A DNA stretch of 64,000 bases, from the NCBI GenBank assembly GCA_001949185.1, contig BDGG01000005.1:496001-560000 (forward strand). The letters are read 5' to 3'. The DNA comes from Ramazzottius varieornatus. Its lineage: Eukaryota; Animalia; Tardigrada. Made by a program: the position numbers and the translations under genes. The notes beneath the pieces were generated by a model. The model was not told the DNA's origin. It ran no database searches and was given only the letters and a program-made list of their open reading frames with translations. Below, piece by piece: positions 41,749 to 62,740 of the stretch (the stretch's first letter is position 1; every line of letters begins with the position of its first letter).

Positions 41749-44700
41749 ATGGACGACAGGCCTTATTTTCGTGGCTGCAACCCTCATCATTTGGATATCG
41801 GTTTGGACGAAAGTCACGAAACTGACGATGGCAAACCTGTTTCCTTCCGTAAACGGGAATCCAGCCATAGTCCCCATGTCGATGGAATGGGAGATTATCT
41901 GGAGAAATATAAAGAATCAATCGAAAATCCCGAAAAATTCTGGACAGACGTGGCGCGCGACTTCTACTGGCACGATACTACTGAGCGTATGAACAGACAC
42001 CAAAAGCCCATGTTTGAATCTAATCTCGACGTGCGGAAGGGGCCAATCTTCACGCGCTTCATGCCAGGAGGTAAAACAATCGCACTTGAATTCTATATAT
42101 TTTTAATCTGTATGAGCTTATTTTCAGCGAAAACCAACCTCTCCTATAATGCGCTGGACAGGAATATCGAACGAGGACTCGGAAACAAGATTGCGTATTA
42201 CTGGTACGATCGCGGGCACTCTCCATGTAAAAATGGTGCCCGATACTCAATTTCGGGAATTTATCTTCTTGTATAGGGAGGGAAATAATATCGGGGACGA
42301 AGGAAAAGTCACCTACTCGCAGCTTCTTTCGAACGTCTCAAGGTTCGCCAATGCGTTGAAGGAGATGGGACTAAAGAAAGGAGACCGAGTCGCGATCTAT
42401 CTTCCGATGATCTTAGAGCTTCCCATCGCTATGCTCGCTTGCGCCAGAATAGGCGTTATCCACTCCGTGGTCTTCGGAGGGTTCTCGGCAGATTCATTGT
42501 CTGAACGAATGATCGATGGACAGTGCAGCGTTCTCGTGACCGCAGGTTTGATTTTAAAGGAAGAACTACAATCACGTGGATTTTGGTACTGCATTATTAC
42601 TCGAGTTGAAATATTACGGGCGGAATTTTCGCTTCTCTGATCATGGATTAATTATTTTTCAGATGGTGTTTGGCGAGGAAACAAGTTCATTAACTTGAAA
42701 GAGATCGCGGACGAAGCTTGCGCGAGATGCGAAGCTCATGGTCATCCCATTACCCGGAAGTTCGTCGTCCGGCATATGGGACCCGTAAAGGCACGCCCGA
42801 ATGTTTTCAATCTATAACGAACGTAATTAAATCAAAGTCGTATAACGTCATTGACTATCGTGTTTTGCAGAGCGTGAGCAACCAATTAGCTAACAGCTCG
42901 GAAAACGGCCTGACCCATCATCCGAAGGGTCTCGGAGGAGCAGGGGACCAAAGACGAGGCTCGTTATGTACTAAAGTTCGCCAAGACGCGCTTGTCATTG
43001 CTTGGGACGACTCGATAGATCGATGGTGGCATGAGGAACTCCACAGAGCTTCCGATAGCTGTCCTGTCGAATGGATGGACGCCGAAGACCCTCTTTTTAT
43101 TCTGTATACATCCGGAAGTACCGGCAAGGTGATTATCGTTCTGCTGCATCGTGATCTTCTTTAAGTTTGCTGATTGTACGAATTTCGATACATTTTTTTT
43201 GTGGTTTCCAGCCCAAAGGCGTCTTACATACCACCGCGGGCTATATGGTTTACGCTGCCTTCACTTTCAAGTAGGCTGTGACATCTAATTTTTCCATTAA
43301 CTAAGTAGGCCTTGGCAGCCGTATAACTAATCTCGCTGAGGTGTGGGATTAGTTAGTAACATTTCTCATTTTAGATGCGTATTCGATTATCAAGAAGACG
43401 ACGTTTACTGGTGTACTGCTGACGCTGGCTGGATCACCGGGCATTCTTACTTGGTTTACGGACCGCTCATCAACGGCGTTACCGGGATAGTTTTCGAAGG
43501 TACCGCTAAGTCAGTGCCAATATGTCTTCTGGCTACTTGGTCGGAGTAAACTTGTTACCGAGCCTATTGCCGCCGGGAAATGTCTCACTGGTGTCACAAG
43601 GAACTGAGATTTCCTTCCTTATCAGGTATTCCTACCCATCCCGAGCCGGATCGATATTGGAAAGTAATTGAGAAGTACAGAGTAACGAAGTTTTACACTG
43701 CGCCGACGGTCATTCGATCCCTCATGAAGTTTGGAGAGGACCTTGTGCTCAAGTACGAAGGGAAGCGGATGATGTCAAGAATTTGTATCGATTAAACTAA
43801 CGAGTGTCTTGTTTATCTTCCAGTCACGATCGAAGTTCCTTGAAGATCTTGGGCACTGTTGGGGAACCCATCAATCCGGAAGCCTGGCTCTGGTATCACA
43901 AATACGTTGGCAATTCCCAGTGCGCCATCGTCGACACATACTGGCAGTGAGTCTCTCTGCAGTAACGTCAGTGAAAGCCTCGTTTGTCTTATAGATTATT
44001 CTATTGATTTCTTTCGAGTAGATGGGAACCAAATTGAGCGTTATCCTTCTTGTTGCTTTGCAGAACGGAAACTGGCGGCCGTAAGACAACTCGCATATCG
44101 TTTGCTTCATCAGTCACAATCGATCAGATGGGCTGACTGACTAAGTTAACAAGTTGAATGTCTTTAGACGTGATAACGCCGCTTCCCAGTGCGACGCCAC
44201 TCGAGCCCGGCTCGGCGACCCTCCCTTTCTTCGGCGTGATACCCGCAGTACTGGACGAAGACGGCAATGAAATCGACGAACCTGACTGTGAAGGGTACCT
44301 TGTTTTCAAAACAGCCTGGCCTGGTATCATGAGGACAGTTTATGGTAACCATGAACTGTACGAGAAGGTCTACTTCAAAAAGTTTCCCGGATACTATACG
44401 ACAGGAGATGGTACGGGTTGTAGGAACCAAACCGTCTATTGCTGTTTCGCTGTGTTGGTTGTGCAGAAGGTTATACTTACTAATTCCTGTTTGTTTTCAG
44501 GTTGTAAAAGGGATAAGAGAGGGTACTACTGGATAACAGGGAGGATCGACGATATGGTCAACGTTTCCGGTCATCTTTTGAGTACCGCCGAGATCGAGTC
44601 CGCTCTCGTCGAGCACCCCAGCGTTGCGGAAGCCGCAGTGGTATCACATCCCCATACGATTAAGGGAGAGTGTACCTACGGTTTCGTTACGCTCAAAGTA

Positions 44701-45028
44701 GATCATGTATTTGATCAGAAGACGGTTAATGAGCTAAAATTAAAAGGTTTGACGCCTTGACGATTTGGTGCTCTGTTATTGTGCCACGAGCCGAACCGGA
44801 AGTGAGTTAAAGCGTCTGTACTTTGCAGTGCGAGAAAAGATTGGAGCCTTCGCTGTTCCCGACTTTTTACAAGATGCTCCCGGTCTTCCAAAGACGCGAT
44901 CTGGAAAAATCATGCGGAGGGTTCTTAGGAAGATCGCCCGAGGCGACCGGAACTTGGGCGATACGTCGACATTGGCGGACCCTACGGTGATCGACTTACT
45001 ATTCAGTCTTCGCCCGAAGAATGCTTGA
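41749..45028 (+). CDS. ACSS2: Acetyl-CoA synthetase (ACSS2-like), multi-exon
   Basis: [97 protein letters not shown]. Confidence 0.97.
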
Positions 45029-46151: not shown

Positions 46152-47224
46152 ATGAACATGGCTGATGTTCTGGACGGCGGTCAAGCTATCCCAGATGCTG
46201 ATGACTTACGTATCAACGTGATCCCCAACTCCCTATCTGGATCCCCTTCGAAAAAAAACCCTCTTCTGTTGTCAATCCAAATACCGCAGAACCACATCGA
46301 ATCAACGGGACGCCAAAATATCCCGCGGTCCGCTGCAGCTGGCAGTAAGCCTCAAGCATCGCCAAAGCCAAAAGCGTCACCATCGAGAGCATCTCCCAAA
46401 AGAAAAGTCGATGAATTCGAACAGTCCACCACATTTCTCGTTACTTCGTTCGTTAACTATCGTCTGAGAAGGCTGAAAGCAGAAACCAAGGCAGAACTTT
46501 TCGCGAACCCTAAACTTCGACGACGCACATATCCATGGACTTCAAACACCAACCGCGCCCTAGAAGGTGGGCAAGCTCTCAGTGTTCTCTTCCTCTGTCA
46601 CGATCTAATGCTGTGTTTTAAATTCAGATGGACCAAGAATCGCACCTCGCTTGGGCCAAGTGGATAAAGTAGCGGAAGCCCTTCAAGCTCTAGGTGACCA
46701 TCTGGACTCGCGCTACTGGCAGTCCTTCGAAGAGGCATTTCCGGCGGACTGGTTCGACTCTAACACCACCGAAGAACTTCGAAACAGGTTCCTGGACATG
46801 TCTCAAGATCTCTACTCTAATGTGCAAGATGTAGAAGACGAAGCCCTGTACGAGGAAAAGATTAACTGGGGACGAATCATCACTCATTTCTGCTTCACAT
46901 CTCAGCTAGCTACAGTTGCTGTCCTGTCCAAACAGTACGAGCTGGTTAATCAGTTAACAGGCTGGTTGACGCAGTTCATCACTCTCCATCTTCGAACGTG
47001 GATCGAGCATCATGGAGGATGGGTAAGCTATCTTTTCCAAATTATTTTAAGGTGTTAAATGGATTTCTGTTTTGCAGGAGGGACTGGTAGATTACCGCAG
47101 AGTACTGTTAGGCAAGTCGAAGCAGGAGGACTCCGCTGTCGACCTGGCGTCCAGCGTGATCGCGGGAGCTGTGCTGGGTGTCTTCAGCTTCTTAGCGTTT
47201 AGAAACTACTCCAACTCGAACTGA
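46152..47224 (+). CDS. Multidomain Bcl-2 family protein (BH4-BH3-BH1-BH2-TM); exons 46152-46566, 46628-47022, 47078-47224
   Basis: BH4-like TTFLVTSFVNYRL, BH3 VAEALQALGDHLD, BH1 INWGRIITHF, BH2 WIEHHGGW|EG (intron after GGW), C-terminal TM VIAGAVLGVFSFLAF. Splice phases are consistent. Confidence 0.93.
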
Positions 47225-52470: not shown

Positions 52471-53704
52471 TTCACCCTGAAACAGATCACCATTTTGCCT
52501 TGAATATTAAGTTAGCAAATTCGTGCTGTTACTGTTATGATTACCGCACCGGTGGATATCCATCACTGTTCGCCGCTGTGCGGTTAACTTATTGAGAGCG
52601 GTTGTGGGTAAATTTTGGTTGTACGGTTGTGACGATGATACTGCCGGCTTAATTTACAGTCATTCTGCGGAAGAACCCGGAAGTTAGAATATCATTGATG
52701 CTATAAAGTTTTCGAATTTTACTTCATGAAGCCATAAGTCGGAGGGTCATTATGTGCTACTTAACGCGTGATATTTGAGCCTGTTTACGATCAGCCATCA
52801 TCATTATTCGGTAGAAAGTTTCCATCTGTTGGCCGACCTTCGAGTTGACATACGGACGATAAATTTACATTTGCTATTGGATCGAGATGCCGTAACACGC
52901 ATGGACCGCAAACCGACATCGCATTGCTTACTTCCAGTGGTCATCTCTGCTTTGACTCCACTGGATGATCATTTCAACGAATGCGGCTTCCTAGATACAG
53001 CCGTCGAAAACTACTCTTTAGCGAGCTTTCCCTCTAGCGATTTTTTGTCTGGGGCGAAGTACTGGTCGCCTAGTCTAGTTGTCGCCGGTCAGGCGTGACA
53101 AAGCGCCAGTTCATAAATCATCGCTAATTAATTCTCAAAATGAATTACTGCTATCTCCGGACAGACACGCGCCAGATCAAGAAGATTATTTACAGTACCA
53201 AAAGCCTTCATGACGAATGTACAAACGGAGAATGGAGTGCAAAACAATTCCAACCGGTTTCAAGATTCGGTAGATGCTAGACAGAGCAGTGCACCATTAG
53301 TAGAAAAGTTGATTTCGATTCTAGAGGAACCAACGTTGAAAAACCAAGGTCCAGTAAAATCGATCCGAGAGATCCGACATCAGCCAGAAAATAAAAACAA
53401 TATGAAGTGGAATTTCAGACTTAACCTCGACCACGCCCAACGCTGCAAAGGCTTCCAGGCCCACCATGCTTTGGAAGGGATTGAAGAGATATAAACATAA
53501 ACAGAACAGTCGAAAGGACGGAAACAACGAAGAGGACTGTGCAGTAACTGAACACAAATGACGATAAAAGCCGTATAATAATTACAGATGACGGCCGGAA
53601 GGAGAGAAGAGAGGAGGGAGGAAGGAGATCACTCGGTCATGTTCGTGTTATTGCAAGTGGCTGTTATCACCCAACACTTTCCACCATCAAAGTTCCCTTC
53701 GTGG

Positions 53705-56700
53705 TCAGTCAGCCGTTGAGTGTGATCTGTGTCGAGACGATTCGACAGGTGGCGCCCCTCCTTGACGTGTGATGTAATGCCAGAATCGAGTCACCACAGC
53801 CGAGGAGCTGGACCCAATCCGCCCCAGCACGTTTCTTCCTTGTCCATCAACGGCGTCCTGAAAAGAAAGGAACATATATTAACTCTCAGCCGTTTGAAGT
53901 TTCGCAAAGCTGGACAAGAAAGAAAAGGCACGTTGTTGGCCGTTGGTCTGGCCGAAAGTTCCCAGACGCTTCAAGCGTTCGGTTTTCAAAGACAACGTTC
54001 AAAAGCTTGAAATTGTTATCCACACAGCGTCTCAATGGTGGTCTAACAAGTTTAAAAGGATTCTGTAACGACTGCGATAATTTTCTCACGTTTAACCCGA
54101 GTCAAGATACCTTGCTTGAGTCGTACTGTATTGCGAGGCGCTTTGAATATTCATTAAATCGACGAAACGCACTGGGGTATTTTTGAATTGGCCAACGCCC
54201 AATACTAACGTCCCAGCAAAGCCTTTCTTCGAGAGCATAAGGTTTCGCTCCAAAGCGATAGTTTTCGAATTTGAGTGTTTGATCAAAACGGCGAACAGCA
54301 GTTTGGCGACACGTGTGTCAGTGTGTGTGTGGGACGACTTGTGATAACATGTTTGAAGTTGATTTTAAATCCGTCATTAGAGGACTTCAGCACGCGTCAA
54401 GCCCACGACTTTGAACATCTTCACTCTGTTTATTCGACTGGGTAAATTTGCACTTGAAAGGTATAATCAGAGATGGAATCAGCCACTTGATAATCATAAG
54501 TCAACGCAGGTGCGGACATACGACCGATCGCGAGGGACCTTTTAAGGGCATCAATCTCATATCTGCCTTGACTCTTCATATTTGACATCTCTTCTTTCCC
54601 TTAGTCAAACATTTTCCACCGTAATCACATTATGTCTCCAAACAAAAGAACAAGTTTTGATAGGCCCCATCTTTCGCCCAAAATATCCAGTCTTCCCTCA
54701 CACTGTTCATGTCCTGTTTTGCCATCCCGCACTAATTTATATCCGTTCACTTAACCCAAACTGCCTCCTAATAAACCTTCACGACCAGAAGGCGCTCTTC
54801 CGGAAATCCTTCATCATTTAATTAGCCAATTATTGTGTGCGCTATTATACGCTGTTAGAAGACCATCCTAGTTATCACTTCCGTGTTGACATAATGTGAT
54901 TGAAAAGGGAACCGAAACAATCGATTGTTATTCTAATGCCCAACATAGCGAATTGTATCATCGTGTCTTTCTTTTCAGTGACTGTGCCACCGTCCAGTAT
55001 GGTTTTTCCCATGAAACACCCACCCGAATCACAAAATGGGTAGTCAATCAAATATCCCGCTTATCAAAGCACATCGAAGCGCATCAAAGCGGGATACTGC
55101 TTCGAAGCGGGGTGAAGCGGAGTAAATAAATTAAATTGTGACATTTCCGATGTGCTTGACTTGCTCCTGATTACCATCGACGATGGGCAACTCCCTCTTT
55201 TGACTAAGCGTTAACAGCCCTTCGAACGCCGTTCAAATTCAGTTTAAAGACTTCGCAACACATGTTGCAAATGTGTAACTGCTAAGCAAACATTTCACTC
55301 TTGACAGACGAAGCGAGACGACGTTTCAACTTTCAAGTCGTAAAAGCGCGGCTTCTCAAACGTCATATCTATATTGAAGAGCTGGTCAGCGGCAGTCAAT
55401 ACGGAAGGTGGTTCTATGTTTGTGATGTCAAGCGAGGGATATGACTTTTGTAACGACAGCGGCATTTTGTTGTCATCCTAAGAACGGTTTGGGGATAAAC
55501 AAACAGCTTCCGCCCACCAACTGATGACCGAAGAGAAGATATTTGCGCATCGAAAAATAGTTGCAGTGCTTACCGTAGTCTGGAACATTTGCAGGTCAAA
55601 TTCGTCGCCAATCTGGGCCAGTCGACAGGCGATGCGGTACTCGAGCTTCTTCATCCGCGTCGCGTCGGCCTCCGACAGGGTTCGCTTTCTTCGTGGGCGC
55701 AGACCGGAAGTGACGATGTCGGGCAGGTCCCAGCTGGCTTCTTCGTCTCGAAACATGTCGGGCGAGTGAGACGCGGTCGAGGAAGCTCCGTCATCGCTGA
55801 ATGGCTCATCTTCGTGTGCGCGATTTAAGTGAACGGCTTTATGCGGAGAAGGACCCATGTCGGGAGCCTCACCGTCGATCGCGTCACCTGCCACCAGAAA
55901 AACTGTTAAAACAATAATGAAAATCAAGTCGTAACTTTTAGAAAAATACATTGCCAGGTGGATCAATTTGAAAGGGGTTCGAGGAGGGACGACAAGTGGA
56001 CAAGTGAGTGGACATTGGGGCGAGCAATTATGACGGCCGCACGTGCATTTCGACCGGCGATTGACAGCTGGCGCCTACTGCATCTCAATTGGAATTGGTC
56101 AACATTATCATTTATCGTCAAAATCCTCTTTATATGTTTTATGGCGGAGTGAGGATCTCTTCGCATTGTCTGCTGATACTGTGGATTGCTCGGCGGTTAC
56201 GAAACTTGTTGTTGCTCATCTTACGGCATCGAAGTGCGCCACTATACTAACAGTTGATATCTTCTGTCAAAGAGGTGAAATTTGAGCAGCTGCTTTTCAG
56301 ATGCCTTATGCAAGATTAGACCGACTCGCATGTCCATCACGAAAACTTCATCGATGCCCTTTTCTGTCGTCTGTCCATCGAACAAAGGAGAAAAACAACC
56401 TGTTTGCGCAAAGTACGAATCAGAGCGGTTGCCGTACTTAATTATCCTAGCACAGCCGAACTTCCGTGGCTAAAGCTGCCTTAACCGCGGCGAAAAGGAA
56501 GAAAACTACACCGCTGACAAAGTGCCGCTAATTAGCGTGTTTACTTCCGACTGCTGGTGCTACCTTTCCCGTTTGAGTCATCGCAGAGTGATTATATCTG
56601 CTCGGATGAACCTCTTCAACAGACGGAGAGAAGCAGCTAATCGCCAATGCACTTGTTGTTTTCTTGTCCTACTAATCCCGTCTTCTGGGTTCTGGGTTCT

Positions 56701-57420
56701 GGCGCCTTTCAACCTTGCACCTGTCGATCGATGAAACATAAGAGCAGCACGGACAATCACAGAGTGACACTGAAATGAGCAGACTCTGATCTCATTGCAC
56801 TATGTAAATAAACCTACAGGTTGTCCTTGTTACCATTATCCCTTGGCCGTCATATCATGCGGATTAGTCATGCAAAATTACAGTAGAAAAGAGAACTTCC
56901 ATCACTATGTAAATAGAATGGAGGCTCGGTACTTACTGTGGAAGGAATTTTCCCGTTGCGCATCGAGCTCTTCCAAAGAGTGGTCCGCCGCTTGTGTTCG
57001 AAAGTTCTCCCAGAAGAGACTCAGTGAGGGACGACTTAATAGATGACGGCGCATCGTCAGCGAAGATCCAGCCCAGATGCAGGCATCAAACGGGAAGTTA
57101 GAAGCTCGGGAAGGACCGAATAACAGTGGTGATTTGGAGCGGACTGTGACGCTCAACTGAAGGTCCAGCTTGACTTCCGGTTGGAGACGACTACGGTCTT
57201 CGTCGGCCAGCATCATGATGTGACTGAAGTCCGGGTCAACGGAAAGATTGTCCTGTTCTTCATCCGAGGTAGTTAACCAAAAGTCAGCGTCACCTGTGGA
57301 CGGGAAGAAGCGAGTGTTGGGAGGGCAGAAGAATCCACGAGGAGAACCATAGCCACTTTCGTCAGTGTGAGCAGGAGAAACAGGAACGGCGTCGAAGGAC
57401 TTGTTGGGCAGATCAGACAT
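53705..57420 (-). CDS. Candidate BH3-only protein (BIM/BAD-like); exons 57420-56937, 55887-55574, 53857-53705; ~316 aa
   Basis: BH3 motif LEYRIACRLAQIGDEFDLQM in a low-complexity S/P/D-rich protein with no BH1/BH2. Donors are GTAAGT (56936) and GTAAGC (55573), acceptors are pyrimidine-rich CAG, and phases match (1 and 0). A 5'-UTR acceptor lies 12 nt before the ATG. Confidence 0.78.
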
Positions 57421-58644
57421 AGTTGATGCTAGCTGCAACTAGTATAGAAGAGGAGGGGTCAACAGTGCTCATCATATTGCACGTAATGAATTGGTTTCAC
57501 TGAATCCACTCACAGTTGGCTCACTTGGGAAACTGGTACATGAAGTTCAGTGGCAGAAATCGGGAACGCGATCAGGGTTGGAGGATCCGGGAATGAACTG
57601 CATCCATCCACCTATTTCAAACACAGATATAATCGGTTTTGAACTGCAAAGTTTGCAACCCGACCGAGGAAGGAGAATGCACTGTTTATGAACTGGGGAA
57701 GTGAGAATACTCGTTCGGGTACTCGTATTCGAAGTGGAAAATGACCAGCTGACCAGGCAGACCAGACTCATATGTGCTACGACCGCCCTTCCAGCTCGTG
57801 TCAGCGAATCACCGCGAGAGATATGGAGATACAGTTTGTTACACGGTGGCAGGCGATGAGGGCATATCTCTGTGACGCAAGCAGTCGCAGGTCTTCCGTA
57901 GTTCTTCGGTGTTCTTCAACTTCTTTGCGGAGGGCTTTCTGCAGTCTTTCCCGCCGTTGTCAAATAAACTTTTGGAAGTCCGGTTTTTGAGGTCCTGAAA
58001 TATTTTCTGCGGCTGAATTACTTGAAGGTGCACACAAAAGATTTATTTACGGCAGTTTTACGCTGTGCTGAATCCCAGTTCAGGAGGTTTTGACGAACTA
58101 CGTACTTCTCGTCGGCTATCAGGGCAGACATATCCGGGATGACAAGGGTAGAGATTTCGATTCGGATATCCATAGAATTAAGCCCTTCATGACACAATTC
58201 AGATCACTAAGAGGTCTCAGATATTCATCTTCCCCAAGGTTGTGTTTAGGCGGGATTTGGCGCAGCATTGCGCTCATCTAGCTGGGCCTTTAACTACGTA
58301 ATCGATCCCCCAGTTAAGCATACTACAGTTTCAGGTTGGTTTCGGAGGACCTTGACGTCTGAATGCCGGCACCTCTGCTTCCCAGCTCGTTTCAACCTCG
58401 ACAAAGTCCACTGTCCCTGCAGAGAAAGTGAACTTTAACCTCGGCTAACTTAACTTCCGAACAAATACAAAAATCCAACCGTCGACTGAGCAAAGCGTCC
58501 ATACATTCACAGAACTGACTTCTCGTGGGTGAGTGGACAAAACCTATGTTGACACGGAATTTGTGTAATTTTCCAATTTGACGGATATGGTTGATTAGTT
58601 TGCCCACTGGTATAACCGCGCTTTAAACTGTCCCTTTTGACGCG

Positions 58645-59150
58645 TGCAATTCGATGCTTGTTATCGTCATGATTAATAGTCAAAATGTTCGGAAGACCGT
58701 ACCAAATGGTGGCACCCGTCGCCCGGTCGTAAAACCCTCTTTCGAAAGATGGACGATCGATGGGCAACTCACAGCTTGTAGTGAGAGCGACGACGTCCAT
58801 GCAAACCGCCGATCAATTCATTTTCCGTCCTGTAATGACCACTCCATCGCTTTGCCAAAAGATCTTTCGACTGCACATTCTATCATATCGCTACCAGGCA
58901 GGAAATCTCCTATCATCAAACTAAGGGAATGGTCCGAGCGCCGCTGTGCGTGGCTAGTGCCAGCTTCCGCTTGGATGATGGATAGGTCATGTACCTTTGC
59001 ATCCAACAAATTTCTGTACCACCATCGGTAGATATTGGTCTGCTAATCCGCTGTTCACCCTGTCACACGATCTGTGTCAAACGACACAACTTTTCATACA
59101 GGCTATTTCTGCGGTTGGTCCCACGCCTGTCCGACACGTGTGCTTCGGCT
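58645..59150. repeat. Dispersed direct repeat, block C copy 2, upstream of the BH3-only gene
   Basis: Collinear ~500 bp similarity to 50770-51270, with indels. Confidence 0.9.
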
Positions 59151-59730
59151 CACGGAAACCTGTTATGTCTGTCGCTGGTTTGTGTGCAGATTTTCTGCAC
59201 ACAAATGACAAATTTAAAGAGACGCGCCAAGGAACCCATATGTTATTTTGGTAAACTTCCCTTTCCGGGTACCAGACTAGAGTCACTGGACTACCAGTTG
59301 GAAGCCAAGTGGCACCACCTCTGATTACCCTCGGGGTAACTACCCCAGCAGCCCAGCGACTGGGTAATTTACAGCGTGCGAAAATTCAATCAACCGCTCA
59401 TATTTGCACTCTCACATTTCAATGCTCACATTACACATGTGCACTGGTTTGATTGATCTGAAAGTCACATAAGACTTTTGATTTGCTTCTTAACCGGAAA
59501 TTCATCCCCAGTCTACTTAGCAAAGCTGCATGACCAATATTAATAAGCTCGATCTAGCTGCAGGATTCTTCAGTTCTCCTGCATCTGTGCGAGCATAGAG
59601 CGGACGTCTTCCGGAGAATTTATCTTATCGGTATACCGCACTTCGGTTTCGTCGATAACGTCAGTTTACTGCAACTACAGAGAGACCGACAGTACGTACC
59701 TGGCAGGCTGGCGACGCGTTCAAGGTGTGT

Positions 59731-59957: not shown

Positions 59958-60835
59958 ATGTCATGGACTGTTAGTAGGTGCTTACAAGGATATCTGAGAA
60001 GCGCTTCTTTCTCTCCTCGGTGGGTGCGACCATGCTCCAAAGAGTTTCATGCGGATGCGAAGCTCAGCAGGAAAAGGAACGCGCATAGTCCACTTCTGTT
60101 CAGACGTGCTGGCGTCATTCCCTATTCCGTTTGTAGCCCGTATTTGCCCAAACTGACTCCTACCCTCGGTTATCGACTCGCTGGGACTGCACCAGGTATG
60201 CTAATGTTGGTCTAACGTCTTTCTTTCTATTTGGCGCGATATTGCGAGAGACTCAAGTCGTATTGCCCACTTGACTTCGCGCAGCGGTAATGGCATTCTC
60301 CTTTCAGTGAGCCACAGCTCGACAGAAATGGTAAATCCGGATGATATCGTTTCCTACGAGTATGTGAAGGAACTCGCAGAAAGTGGTAAAGGAATTATTA
60401 TTGACGTGCGTCGGCCGGAAGAAAGGGACACTGATGGTTCCATACCCTCAACCGTCAATATCCCTTGTACGAAAAGTTGGTACGAAAATTTAGACTGGTG
60501 GTCCTGACTGTTGTTTTTTTGCAGTGAACGATATTGCGGAAGCCTTCGCGATGTCTCCCGAAGAACTTTCATCGAAATACGGCCTCAACATCCATGATGT
60601 TAACGACGAAATTATCTTCCACTGTCGATCAGGAGCACGAAGTCAGCAAGCCATGGAGATCGCAAGGAATAATGGCTACCGAAGGTGAGTACTGCTTCCT
60701 GTTTTTCACGGTTACGTTTACCACATGCTGCTGTATGGAGCACAGGCCAATGAGAAGTGAAGATTATGGCCGTCTTTCAGTGCAAAGAACTACAAAGGAA
60801 GCATCACAGAATGGAACGCCAAGACAAAACGGTAG
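59958..60835 (+). CDS. Single-domain rhodanese/sulfurtransferase (TSTD-like) with putative mitochondrial presequence, 4 exons
   Basis: IIDVRRPEE..GSIPSTVNIPL, active-site IFHCRSGARS, NYKGSITEW. N-terminus is Arg/Ser-rich and poor in acidic residues. Confidence 0.88.
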
Positions 60836-61542: not shown

Positions 61543-62740
61543 TCAGTTGAATCGGAAGGATGGTTCCATAGATGACAAAATATCCCATTCGTTGTCCTCC
61601 ATGATCTGGGCGCTTGAAATTCTGGAGCTCAGAAAATATCTAGAAATGAAACTGGTTATCGGGACCTGACTGGAAAATCCCCTTCATCCGAAGTGATCAG
61701 TCTTACCCCAAGCCAGCTCCAATAACCAAGGCAAGTACGTTCGTTAGAATAAGCACCTTCCAGAAATGGGTCTTCAAGCTGGATGGCTTTTTGATGACTC
61801 GTCGTACACGATGCAATCTAACGGACAAAGAGAACGGCGATTTAGTGTTACCGCGCAGGACTTATGTAAGGTACTCTGCAAACCCTTCATAGGTGTACGC
61901 TAAAAGGTTTTCAGGCTTCACGTTACTCCGTGAACGGAAAAATGGTACGTTCAGAACGAACGTACACTTTTGCCCCGTTTTCTGTGTTATGCCATTCCCA
62001 AATCCAGTCAGTAGATCCGTCGGCGTTCACGGGATCCAGCATCTGCCGTTCAAATTCTTCGTTGCAGTCCCCACTTTCCGTAGGCGAATCCGGAGACATG
62101 GGGCTAAAAACAATAAGGAAAAAGATGTCTGGCATCGAAATTGAACTCGAAATACTTTTTGGCGAAGCGTTACAGGACGACTACCTGCTACGCTTGCTTT
62201 GGTAGAGGCTCTGTCGAGCAGAGTTTTGCAGCGACTCCTTCTGGGCATCGAACAGCAAACGTTCCATGCTCGCGGATTTCTTGGCCTGTGTGGAGTTGTA
62301 CTGAGCAGTGGACACCAGCATGGTCTCTTCCGTTTCACGTCCAGATGCCGAGGGGACAGAAAGGACTTCCCATGATTCAGTGGATTCTGCAGAATGGTAA
62401 AGGTCCTTTTAAAGTTTGTAAACAGTGAGTTCAAAGAGTGAGCATAACAATAATTCATTCATTCTGCTCGTCTGGATCACGACCAGAAGGTTCATCGCTT
62501 CTTTCCAGGATTCCGAGCTTATCATCTCTCCACTTATGCTGTGCGGAAGTTTAATTACAGGCACTAGTTTCTAAACCTTCGGATTCCACCTTCGTTTTCA
62601 GATCAACGAGCAACTCTCGCACGAAAAAACAGACGCTATAATAATCATTGCTGTGCTAATAATATCTCGATGGGTTTCTTCGAGTCCCGCTTACCTCTCA
62701 TTCGATCCATTTCTGGAGAGGTAGGATGAGATTTCTCCAT
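61543..62740 (-). CDS. BNIP3: BNIP3/NIX-like mitophagy receptor; exons 62740-62695, 62386-62185, 62103-61966, 61817-61707, 61639-61543; 197 aa
   Basis: N-terminal LIR ESWEVL, MERLLFDAQKES (cf. BNIP3 MEKILLDAQHES), DWIWEW (cf. DWIWDW), TM KVLILTNVLALVIGAGLGYFL with GxxxG. All four introns are GT-AG and in phase; total 594 nt. The first exon is the least certain. Confidence 0.88.

Follow-up and report, generated by a model that had tools for sequence, protein, structure and literature searches.

Does the tardigrade Ramazzottius varieornatus possess a cell-suicide trigger of the kind that BIM represents? BH3-only proteins are stress sensors that start mitochondrial apoptosis, and the question is raised by a three-exon gene at positions 53,705 to 57,420, on the reverse strand, of a 64,000-nucleotide stretch of this genome (assembly GCA_001949185.1, contig BDGG01000005.1, positions 496,001 to 560,000; hereafter, the window). 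An earlier examination of the letters of the window, to which we refer as the sequence-only reading, had described a hidden, BIM/BAD-like BH3-only gene. Our analysis indicates that the product, RvY_10019, is probably a BH3-only protein with a BIM/BMF-like architecture, which makes it the best current candidate for a BIM-like cell-suicide trigger in Tardigrada, where none has been described. The motif itself, its selective conservation, the disorder of the surrounding protein and a conserved C-terminal helix speak for the BH3-only reading; membership in the BIM or BAD family is not shown, and binding and killing are predictions.

The three-exon gene is real. Exon 1 (57420-56937) opens with an ATG at 57420 and supplies 161 codons and one base, that is, residues 1-161 and the first base of codon 162; exon 2 (55887-55574), which bears the BH3, encodes residues 162-266; and exon 3 (53857-53705) encodes residues 267-316 followed by a TGA stop. 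The frame remains intact throughout, the first junction splitting an AGT (Ser) codon, and all splice borders are GT/AG, with the donors GTAAGT and GTAAGC and with acceptors (...GGCAG and ...TTTCAG) that follow polypyrimidine tracts. The full-length sequence used here (P0010) was the product of a profile search of protein databases and equals the GenBank entry 'hypothetical protein RvY_10019' of R. varieornatus, 316 residues in length; its residues 1-161, 163-266 and 267-316 are the three exon translations, letter for letter. The annotation carries no name and no domain, and its splice junctions are exactly those first proposed, 56937/55887 and 55574/53857. Because the exon translations are those of an annotated protein, of which a paralogue (RvY_10031) also exists, the gene is unnamed rather than hidden. 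A scan of 53000-59500 for promoter elements found neither a p53-type response element (with up to two mismatches) nor a FOXO site, the shuffle mean being 0.7, and an Rfam scan of 45-64 kb gave no match.

The proposed motif, LEYRIACRLAQIGDEFDLQM, is located at 55645-55586 in exon 2. Its core, IACRLAQIGDEFD (55595-55633, reverse strand; residues 247-259), places I247, L251, I254 and F258 at the hydrophobic positions h1 to h4 and includes the pair G255-D256, so that the four hydrophobic residues and the GD ascribed to exon 2 are indeed present. Compared with a strict 13-position BH3 pattern (h1-small-x-x-h2(L)-x-x-h3-small-D-acidic-h4-polar), the core satisfies all nine specified positions, and the pattern is found nowhere else among the 137,229 six-frame residues of the DNA examined. 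Shuffling of the protein reproduced a match in 41 of 200,000 trials, a rate at which a few strict matches per proteome would arise by chance. The weight of the argument therefore rests on conservation and context.

Conservation was assessed with the credible relatives of exon 2, of which an exhaustive phmmer search against 1.8 billion representatives yielded only four: the paralogue (P0001); a 324-residue orthologue, P0003, with its variant P0006; the 150-residue P0002, a fragment of the gene of P0003; and the 96-residue P0005, a fragment from a more distant source. RvY_10019 and P0003 are 51% identical overall. Their longest identical run extends over 22 residues, LEYRIACRLAQIGDEFDLQMFQ (55580-55645, reverse strand; residues 243-264), and the next longest over 7; were positions independent, the probability of such an invariant run would be about 1e-4. 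P0005, the most distant relative, departs from this block only at non-consensus positions (R to Q, Q to T, L to V, Q to K and M to F); it retains h1 to h4, along with the small residues, the G-D-E and the cap. Conservation focused on the BH3 had been suggested as a check on the original idea, and this is the pattern observed. Other searches gave no further relatives: one with exon 1, word-indexed, found nothing, its length window leaving out the 311- to 324-residue relatives, and a metagenome scan with the alignment produced 360 pattern matches and no relative. The metagenomic P0004 (210 residues, E=3e-6) was rejected as a low-complexity repeat (...RQIGEDTPLPDSGG...) without the G-D pair.

The same relatives inform on splicing. 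P0003 and P0006 sit on contigs of 1,524 and 1,458 bases, which leave no room for kilobase introns, while P0002 is exon 2 read through into non-coding flanks at both borders. Together, and as indirect transcript evidence, these sequences show that the exon borders are the same in the orthologue and that its mRNA is spliced. The exon borders are also shared by the paralogue, RvY_10031 (GAU98962.1, 311 residues), the single one detected in a six-frame search of the whole genome (55.8 Mb, 200 contigs), which lies about 45 kb away in inverted orientation. Between the two genes, a tract at 54350-55790 of the reverse strand (~4925-6350 of L005, the stretch that holds the paralogue) is nearly identical, at 98-100% of DNA positions; it spans codons 33-104 of exon 2 and about 1.2 kb of intron 2, with a synonymous divergence (dS) of 0. 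Outside the tract the genes are 57-75% identical (67% in exon 1) and dS is about 1. The tract is probably the result of recent gene conversion between RvY_10019 and RvY_10031; alternatively, it may contain a constrained intronic element, and Rfam has no match there. The ratio of non-synonymous to synonymous divergence (dN/dS) is 0.36 in exon 1 and 0.27 in exon 3, with a range of 0.19-0.36 outside the converted tract, and both paralogues are therefore under purifying selection.

Exon 1 encodes a disordered N-terminal region with short conserved motifs, and its MSDLP start is common to the orthologue P0003. At the corresponding position, RvY_10031 (3370-3915 of L005, forward strand) reads IISQLP, with no Met, and the public RvY_10031 model starts with MVDQ; this beginning is missing from the open reading frame translated there and seems to come from a short exon further upstream. 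The N-terminus of this paralogue may be mis-annotated or truly different.

RvY_10019 is a protein in which Ser, Asp, Arg and Pro abound, and Pfam assigns it to no family. An AlphaFold2 model, run with a five-sequence alignment, has a mean predicted local distance difference test score (pLDDT) of 38 and contains only two helices, at residues 234-264 (the BH3) and 284-296. Neither BH1, BH2, BH4 nor a Bcl-2 fold is present, Pfam giving none and AlphaFold2 only these two isolated helices; the description of the protein as disordered and devoid of BH1 and BH2 is thus upheld. The second helix, which is predicted with low confidence, concerns the remark that AVVTRFWHYITRQ, in exon 3, resembles the membrane-binding helix at the C-terminus of BIM. 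This amphipathic segment, SSAVVTRFWHYIT (53768-53806, reverse strand; residues 284-296), has a hydrophobic moment (muH) of 0.50, is conserved in P0001 and P0003 and is followed by an invariant ITRQGG. A tail-anchoring transmembrane segment in exon 3 was ruled out, since the protein holds no uncharged run of 12 residues or more. The segment is a conserved, predicted amphipathic helix, and not a stretch able to span a membrane.

Conservation also reaches beyond the BH3. The short runs HTDESGY, MRRHL, DLPDI, ITRQGGA and RSHSTAD are likewise invariant with respect to the orthologue. Within the first run lies ESGYGS (57343-57360, reverse strand; residues 21-26), the counterparts of which are DSGYYS in the paralogue and ESGYHS in the orthologue; the shared form [DE]SGYxS fits a phosphodegron of the DpSGXXpS type, the consensus of the beta-TrCP degron (PMC13097077). 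Two conserved sites have the RxRxxS form favoured by basophilic kinases: RKRTLS (55673-55690, reverse strand; residues 228-233), 14 residues upstream of the BH3 and kept as RTRTMS in the orthologue, and the C-terminal RHRSHS (53717-53734, reverse strand; residues 308-313), within the invariant RSHSTAD. Both are putative regulatory phosphosites and, by analogy, these elements suggest a BIM/BAD-style control by phosphorylation and degradation.

The nearest known sequences also favour the BH3-only reading. A 29-residue peptide around the motif, searched against all PDB sequences, gave ten matches, none with an individually significant E-value. Six are BH3 peptides or designed BH3-type binders (BID 2voi_B, two of BIM, EGL-1 1ty4_C and two designed Bcl-xL/Mcl-1 binders), and the others comprise a PXT1 peptide and three alphaRep/HEAT-like repeats with LGQIGDE; the best single peptide match is the BID BH3 of 2voi_B (...IARHLAQIGDEMD...). 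The full-length protein retrieved only chance matches from the PDB (E>0.5). By language-model features, its nearest neighbour in the ESM Atlas is an arthropod cluster without a name (0.90; 247 residues; 119 members), followed by BMF, PUMA, BIM, PXT1 and BIK. Residues 1-225, which exclude the BH3, still lead to this group: the two matches listed are a BMF/BIM and a Bim_N cluster at 0.77, a value that the calibration of the method grades as a lead only. The structure-based search of the ESM Atlas gave template modelling scores below 0.3 throughout and is meaningless for a disordered protein.

Comparison with characterized BH3-only proteins defines the resemblance further. Like RvY_10019, BIM and BMF are disordered, carry the BH3 on an exon of its own, have N-terminal phospho-motifs and possess a short, basic, amphipathic C-terminal helix. 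The core I-A-x-x-L-x-x-I-G-D-E-F has 8 of 13 positions in common with the BIM BH3 as quoted in the sequence-only reading, and the Gly before its Asp is found in BIM, BID and BIK. The key residues of the BIM C-terminal sequence are I181, L185, R186, I188, R190 and V192 (PMC6414199); the tardigrade VVTRFWHYITR can be laid on the centre of that sequence, as a resemblance only, and BIM ends at this helix, whereas RvY_10019 continues with a 20-residue tail. Inspection of the alignment by eye found no conserved dynein-light-chain motif of the TQT type. The likeness to BIM and BMF does not tell homology from convergence. BAD differs: it has a Ser before the Asp and 14-3-3 sites flanking its BH3, whereas RvY_10019 has Gly255, and its RxRxxS sites offer an analogy only. 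Among the other vertebrate types, BID is a folded helical bundle activated by cleavage, in contrast to the predicted disorder of RvY_10019, and BIK has a true transmembrane anchor.

Closer in phylogeny are EGL-1 and CED-13 of Caenorhabditis elegans and Sayonara of Drosophila, members of the same superphylum with the role that is proposed here for RvY_10019. EGL-1 (1ty4_C, a chain of 57 residues) is very short and, outside the motif, unrelated to RvY_10019. Sayonara (CG14044; PTHR21974) is a coiled-coil protein that arose within Diptera; its BH3, LAYNLGVIGDARK, is weaker and is not required for gross binding, and its activity depends on two coiled-coil domains (PMC10107002); RvY_10019, in contrast, has a canonical motif and neither long helices nor a coiled coil in its AlphaFold2 model. 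Comparable in kind are the echinoderm and cnidarian candidates obtained by BLAST with human BIM, BAD and BMF, which are known in silico only, measure 118-373 residues, are predicted to be disordered and have the BH3 on a single exon (PMC8998228). That survey of metazoan Bcl-2 proteins lists no ecdysozoan BH3-only protein beyond C. elegans and leaves tardigrades unmentioned (PMC8998228). Those characterized in Ecdysozoa are limited to EGL-1/CED-13 and Sayonara, which are atypical. Our own search for literature on tardigrade or arthropod BH3-only proteins found no relevant paper.

The genomic neighbourhood supplies a potential partner. A three-exon Bcl-2-family gene (46152-46566, 46628-47022 and 47078-47224, forward strand; 318 residues; PF00452, E=2.8e-18) is convergent with RvY_10019, the 3' ends lying 6.5 kb apart, and no recognizable domain was found in the stretch between the two. 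Its product has the BH3 LQALGDHLD, the BH1 NWGR, the BH2 HHGGW and a C-terminal transmembrane segment, the gene has the family-typical intron after Trp, and Bcl-xL and Bcl-2 are its closest relatives of known structure (E about 1e-12). The only other Bcl-2-fold match in the genome is on contig 15 (767163-767483; L004 1447-1833, reverse strand), where the BH1-BH2 exon, the one exon examined, has BAK as its closest PDB match (E=1.4e-8); this BAK-like gene could possibly encode a pore-forming effector. Two Bcl-2-fold genes are a lower bound for this genome. Upstream of RvY_10019 are a rhodanese-like gene (60271-60688, forward strand) and, beyond it, a BNIP3-like gene (61986-62378, reverse strand) with a DWIWEW motif, the only match to PF06553 in the genome (28.5 bits, cut-off 26). 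The Bcl-2, BH3-only and BNIP3-like genes all fall within 17 kb. Upstream of the Bcl-2 gene, the window also contains exons for the C-terminal part of an AMP-binding enzyme of the acetyl-CoA-synthetase type (44158-45028, forward strand; PF13193, E=7e-12).

A complex of residues 228-270 with the exon-2 core of this neighbour (alpha-2 to alpha-8) was predicted alongside three controls. It scored 0.55, against 0.01 for the best control, a result rated 'weak support'; at least 90% of contacts are common to the runs, and the partner has a pLDDT of 64 or more. In the calibration of this score, the mark was reached by 51 of 78 solved complexes and by 2 of 108 mismatched pairs, and scores of 0.60 or less comprised only 5 of those 78, plus all 4 mismatches that passed. 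The prediction lends mild support to the likeness and is not evidence of binding.

A mechanism can be proposed by extension from established BH3-only biology. RvY_10019 and RvY_10031 would be two intrinsically disordered BH3-only proteins. In each, a long disordered N-terminal region with short regulatory motifs would precede the BH3, which has its own exon, and the last exon would provide a short, basic, amphipathic helix. Upon a death signal, residues 243-264 would fold into a helix, I247, L251, I254 and F258 would insert into the hydrophobic groove of a protein with the Bcl-2 fold, with D256 pairing to the Arg of the BH1 motif NWGR. The likeliest partner would be the Bcl-xL-like protein encoded 6.5 kb away, with the BAK-like protein of contig 15 as a possible second target. 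Binding would neutralize the survival protein and might also activate the effector, leading to mitochondrial apoptosis. Binding, killing and regulation alike are drawn from this analogy.

Several observations weigh against assigning RvY_10019 to the BH3-only proteins. No BH3-only Pfam family (BIM, BAD, BID or BIK) exceeds its cut-off: the BID model (PF06393) matches P0010 at E=0.083 and 12.9 bits, confined to the BH3, the BIK model (PF12201) matches P0005 at E=0.011 and 16.2 bits, and Bclx_interact (PF08945) matches the paralogue at E=2.5 and 8.5 bits, in each case on the motif and against a cut-off of 25 bits, while Bim_N (PF06773) and BMF give no significant match and BAD (PF10514) none. Membership in the BIM or BAD family is accordingly not demonstrated by these tests. 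The relatives retrieved with exon 2, by profile and metagenome searches, reach the level of tardigrades only, and, given the gene conversion, nothing can be read from the fact that the two paralogues have identical BH3s. Transcript support is indirect, coming from the orthologue. The complex score of 0.55 falls where passes are often wrong, the pass may stem from the model's memory of solved BH3:Bcl-2 structures, and helix alpha-1 was missing from the Bcl-2 chain that was folded. Finally, BH3-like motifs are also present in proteins with no part in the regulation of apoptosis, and the LxxIGDE of this motif also resembles the consensus of HEAT-like and alphaRep repeats.

The explanation that best withstands the evidence, apart from a BH3-only protein, is that RvY_10019 is a conserved, tardigrade-specific disordered protein in which a helical motif mimics a BH3 and serves some other partner, or binds Bcl-2 proteins in a non-apoptotic capacity such as autophagy, mitophagy or calcium control, after the manner of Beclin or BNIP3. 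Clustering with a BNIP3-like gene of mitophagy type speaks for such a protein, yet what lies nearest to it in the PDB and the ESM Atlas is the pro-apoptotic BH3-only type and not Beclin or BNIP3. Similarly, the silence of the BH3-only Pfam families and the weak rating of the complex score suit a mimic, as does the invariance of HTDESGY, MRRHL, DLPDI, ITRQGG and RSHSTAD, which points to functions beyond the BH3; a mimic would not, however, readily account for a motif that agrees with the consensus at all nine positions, exactly those retained in P0005, in a protein with the architecture typical of the BIM/BMF type. We consider this explanation unlikely, though it deserves to be taken seriously.

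Far less probable is that the motif is functionless, either a product of chance or what is left of a HEAT-like repeat (A..AL..IGDE), the protein being a rapidly evolving orphan. The few strict matches expected per proteome make a coincidence conceivable, and the top two PDB matches of the 29-residue peptide are in fact alphaRep/HEAT-like proteins with LGQIGDE. Against this stands an invariant block of 22 residues where the next longest has 7, and in RvY_10019 the GDE is followed by Phe at h4 and an acidic cap, where the repeats carry Arg. A HEAT-like repeat proper was ruled out, the motif occurring as a single copy, with no array, in a predicted disordered context. Least credible of all is an annotation artefact or pseudogene, for which it could be cited that the transcript support is indirect, but which is contradicted by the intact frame over three exons with canonical splice sites, the same structure in the paralogue, the full-length orthologues on intron-less 1.5-kb contigs and a dN/dS well below 1.

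If RvY_10019 is indeed a BH3-only protein, its origin becomes of interest. We offer as a tentative and rather doubtful proposal that the tardigrade pair and the 119-member arthropod cluster are true orthologues of vertebrate BIM and BMF, descended from a gene of the bilaterian ancestor that persisted in Panarthropoda, whereas flies and nematodes lost or replaced it. Were this so, the ancestral gene would have had a phosphodegron region at the N-terminus, an exon for the BH3 and another for a basic C-terminal helix, and tardigrades would run a minimal, mammalian-style tripartite switch made up of a Bcl-xL-like, a BAK-like and a BH3-only protein.

The candidate status of RvY_10019 has consequences of its own. 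If it holds, a short testable peptide and a partner pair are at hand, and the tripartite Bcl-2 switch would seem to be ancestral to ecdysozoans and to have been secondarily lost in the model species. For the organism, it would provide a handle on the choice between repair and cell death in an animal that survives desiccation and radiation.

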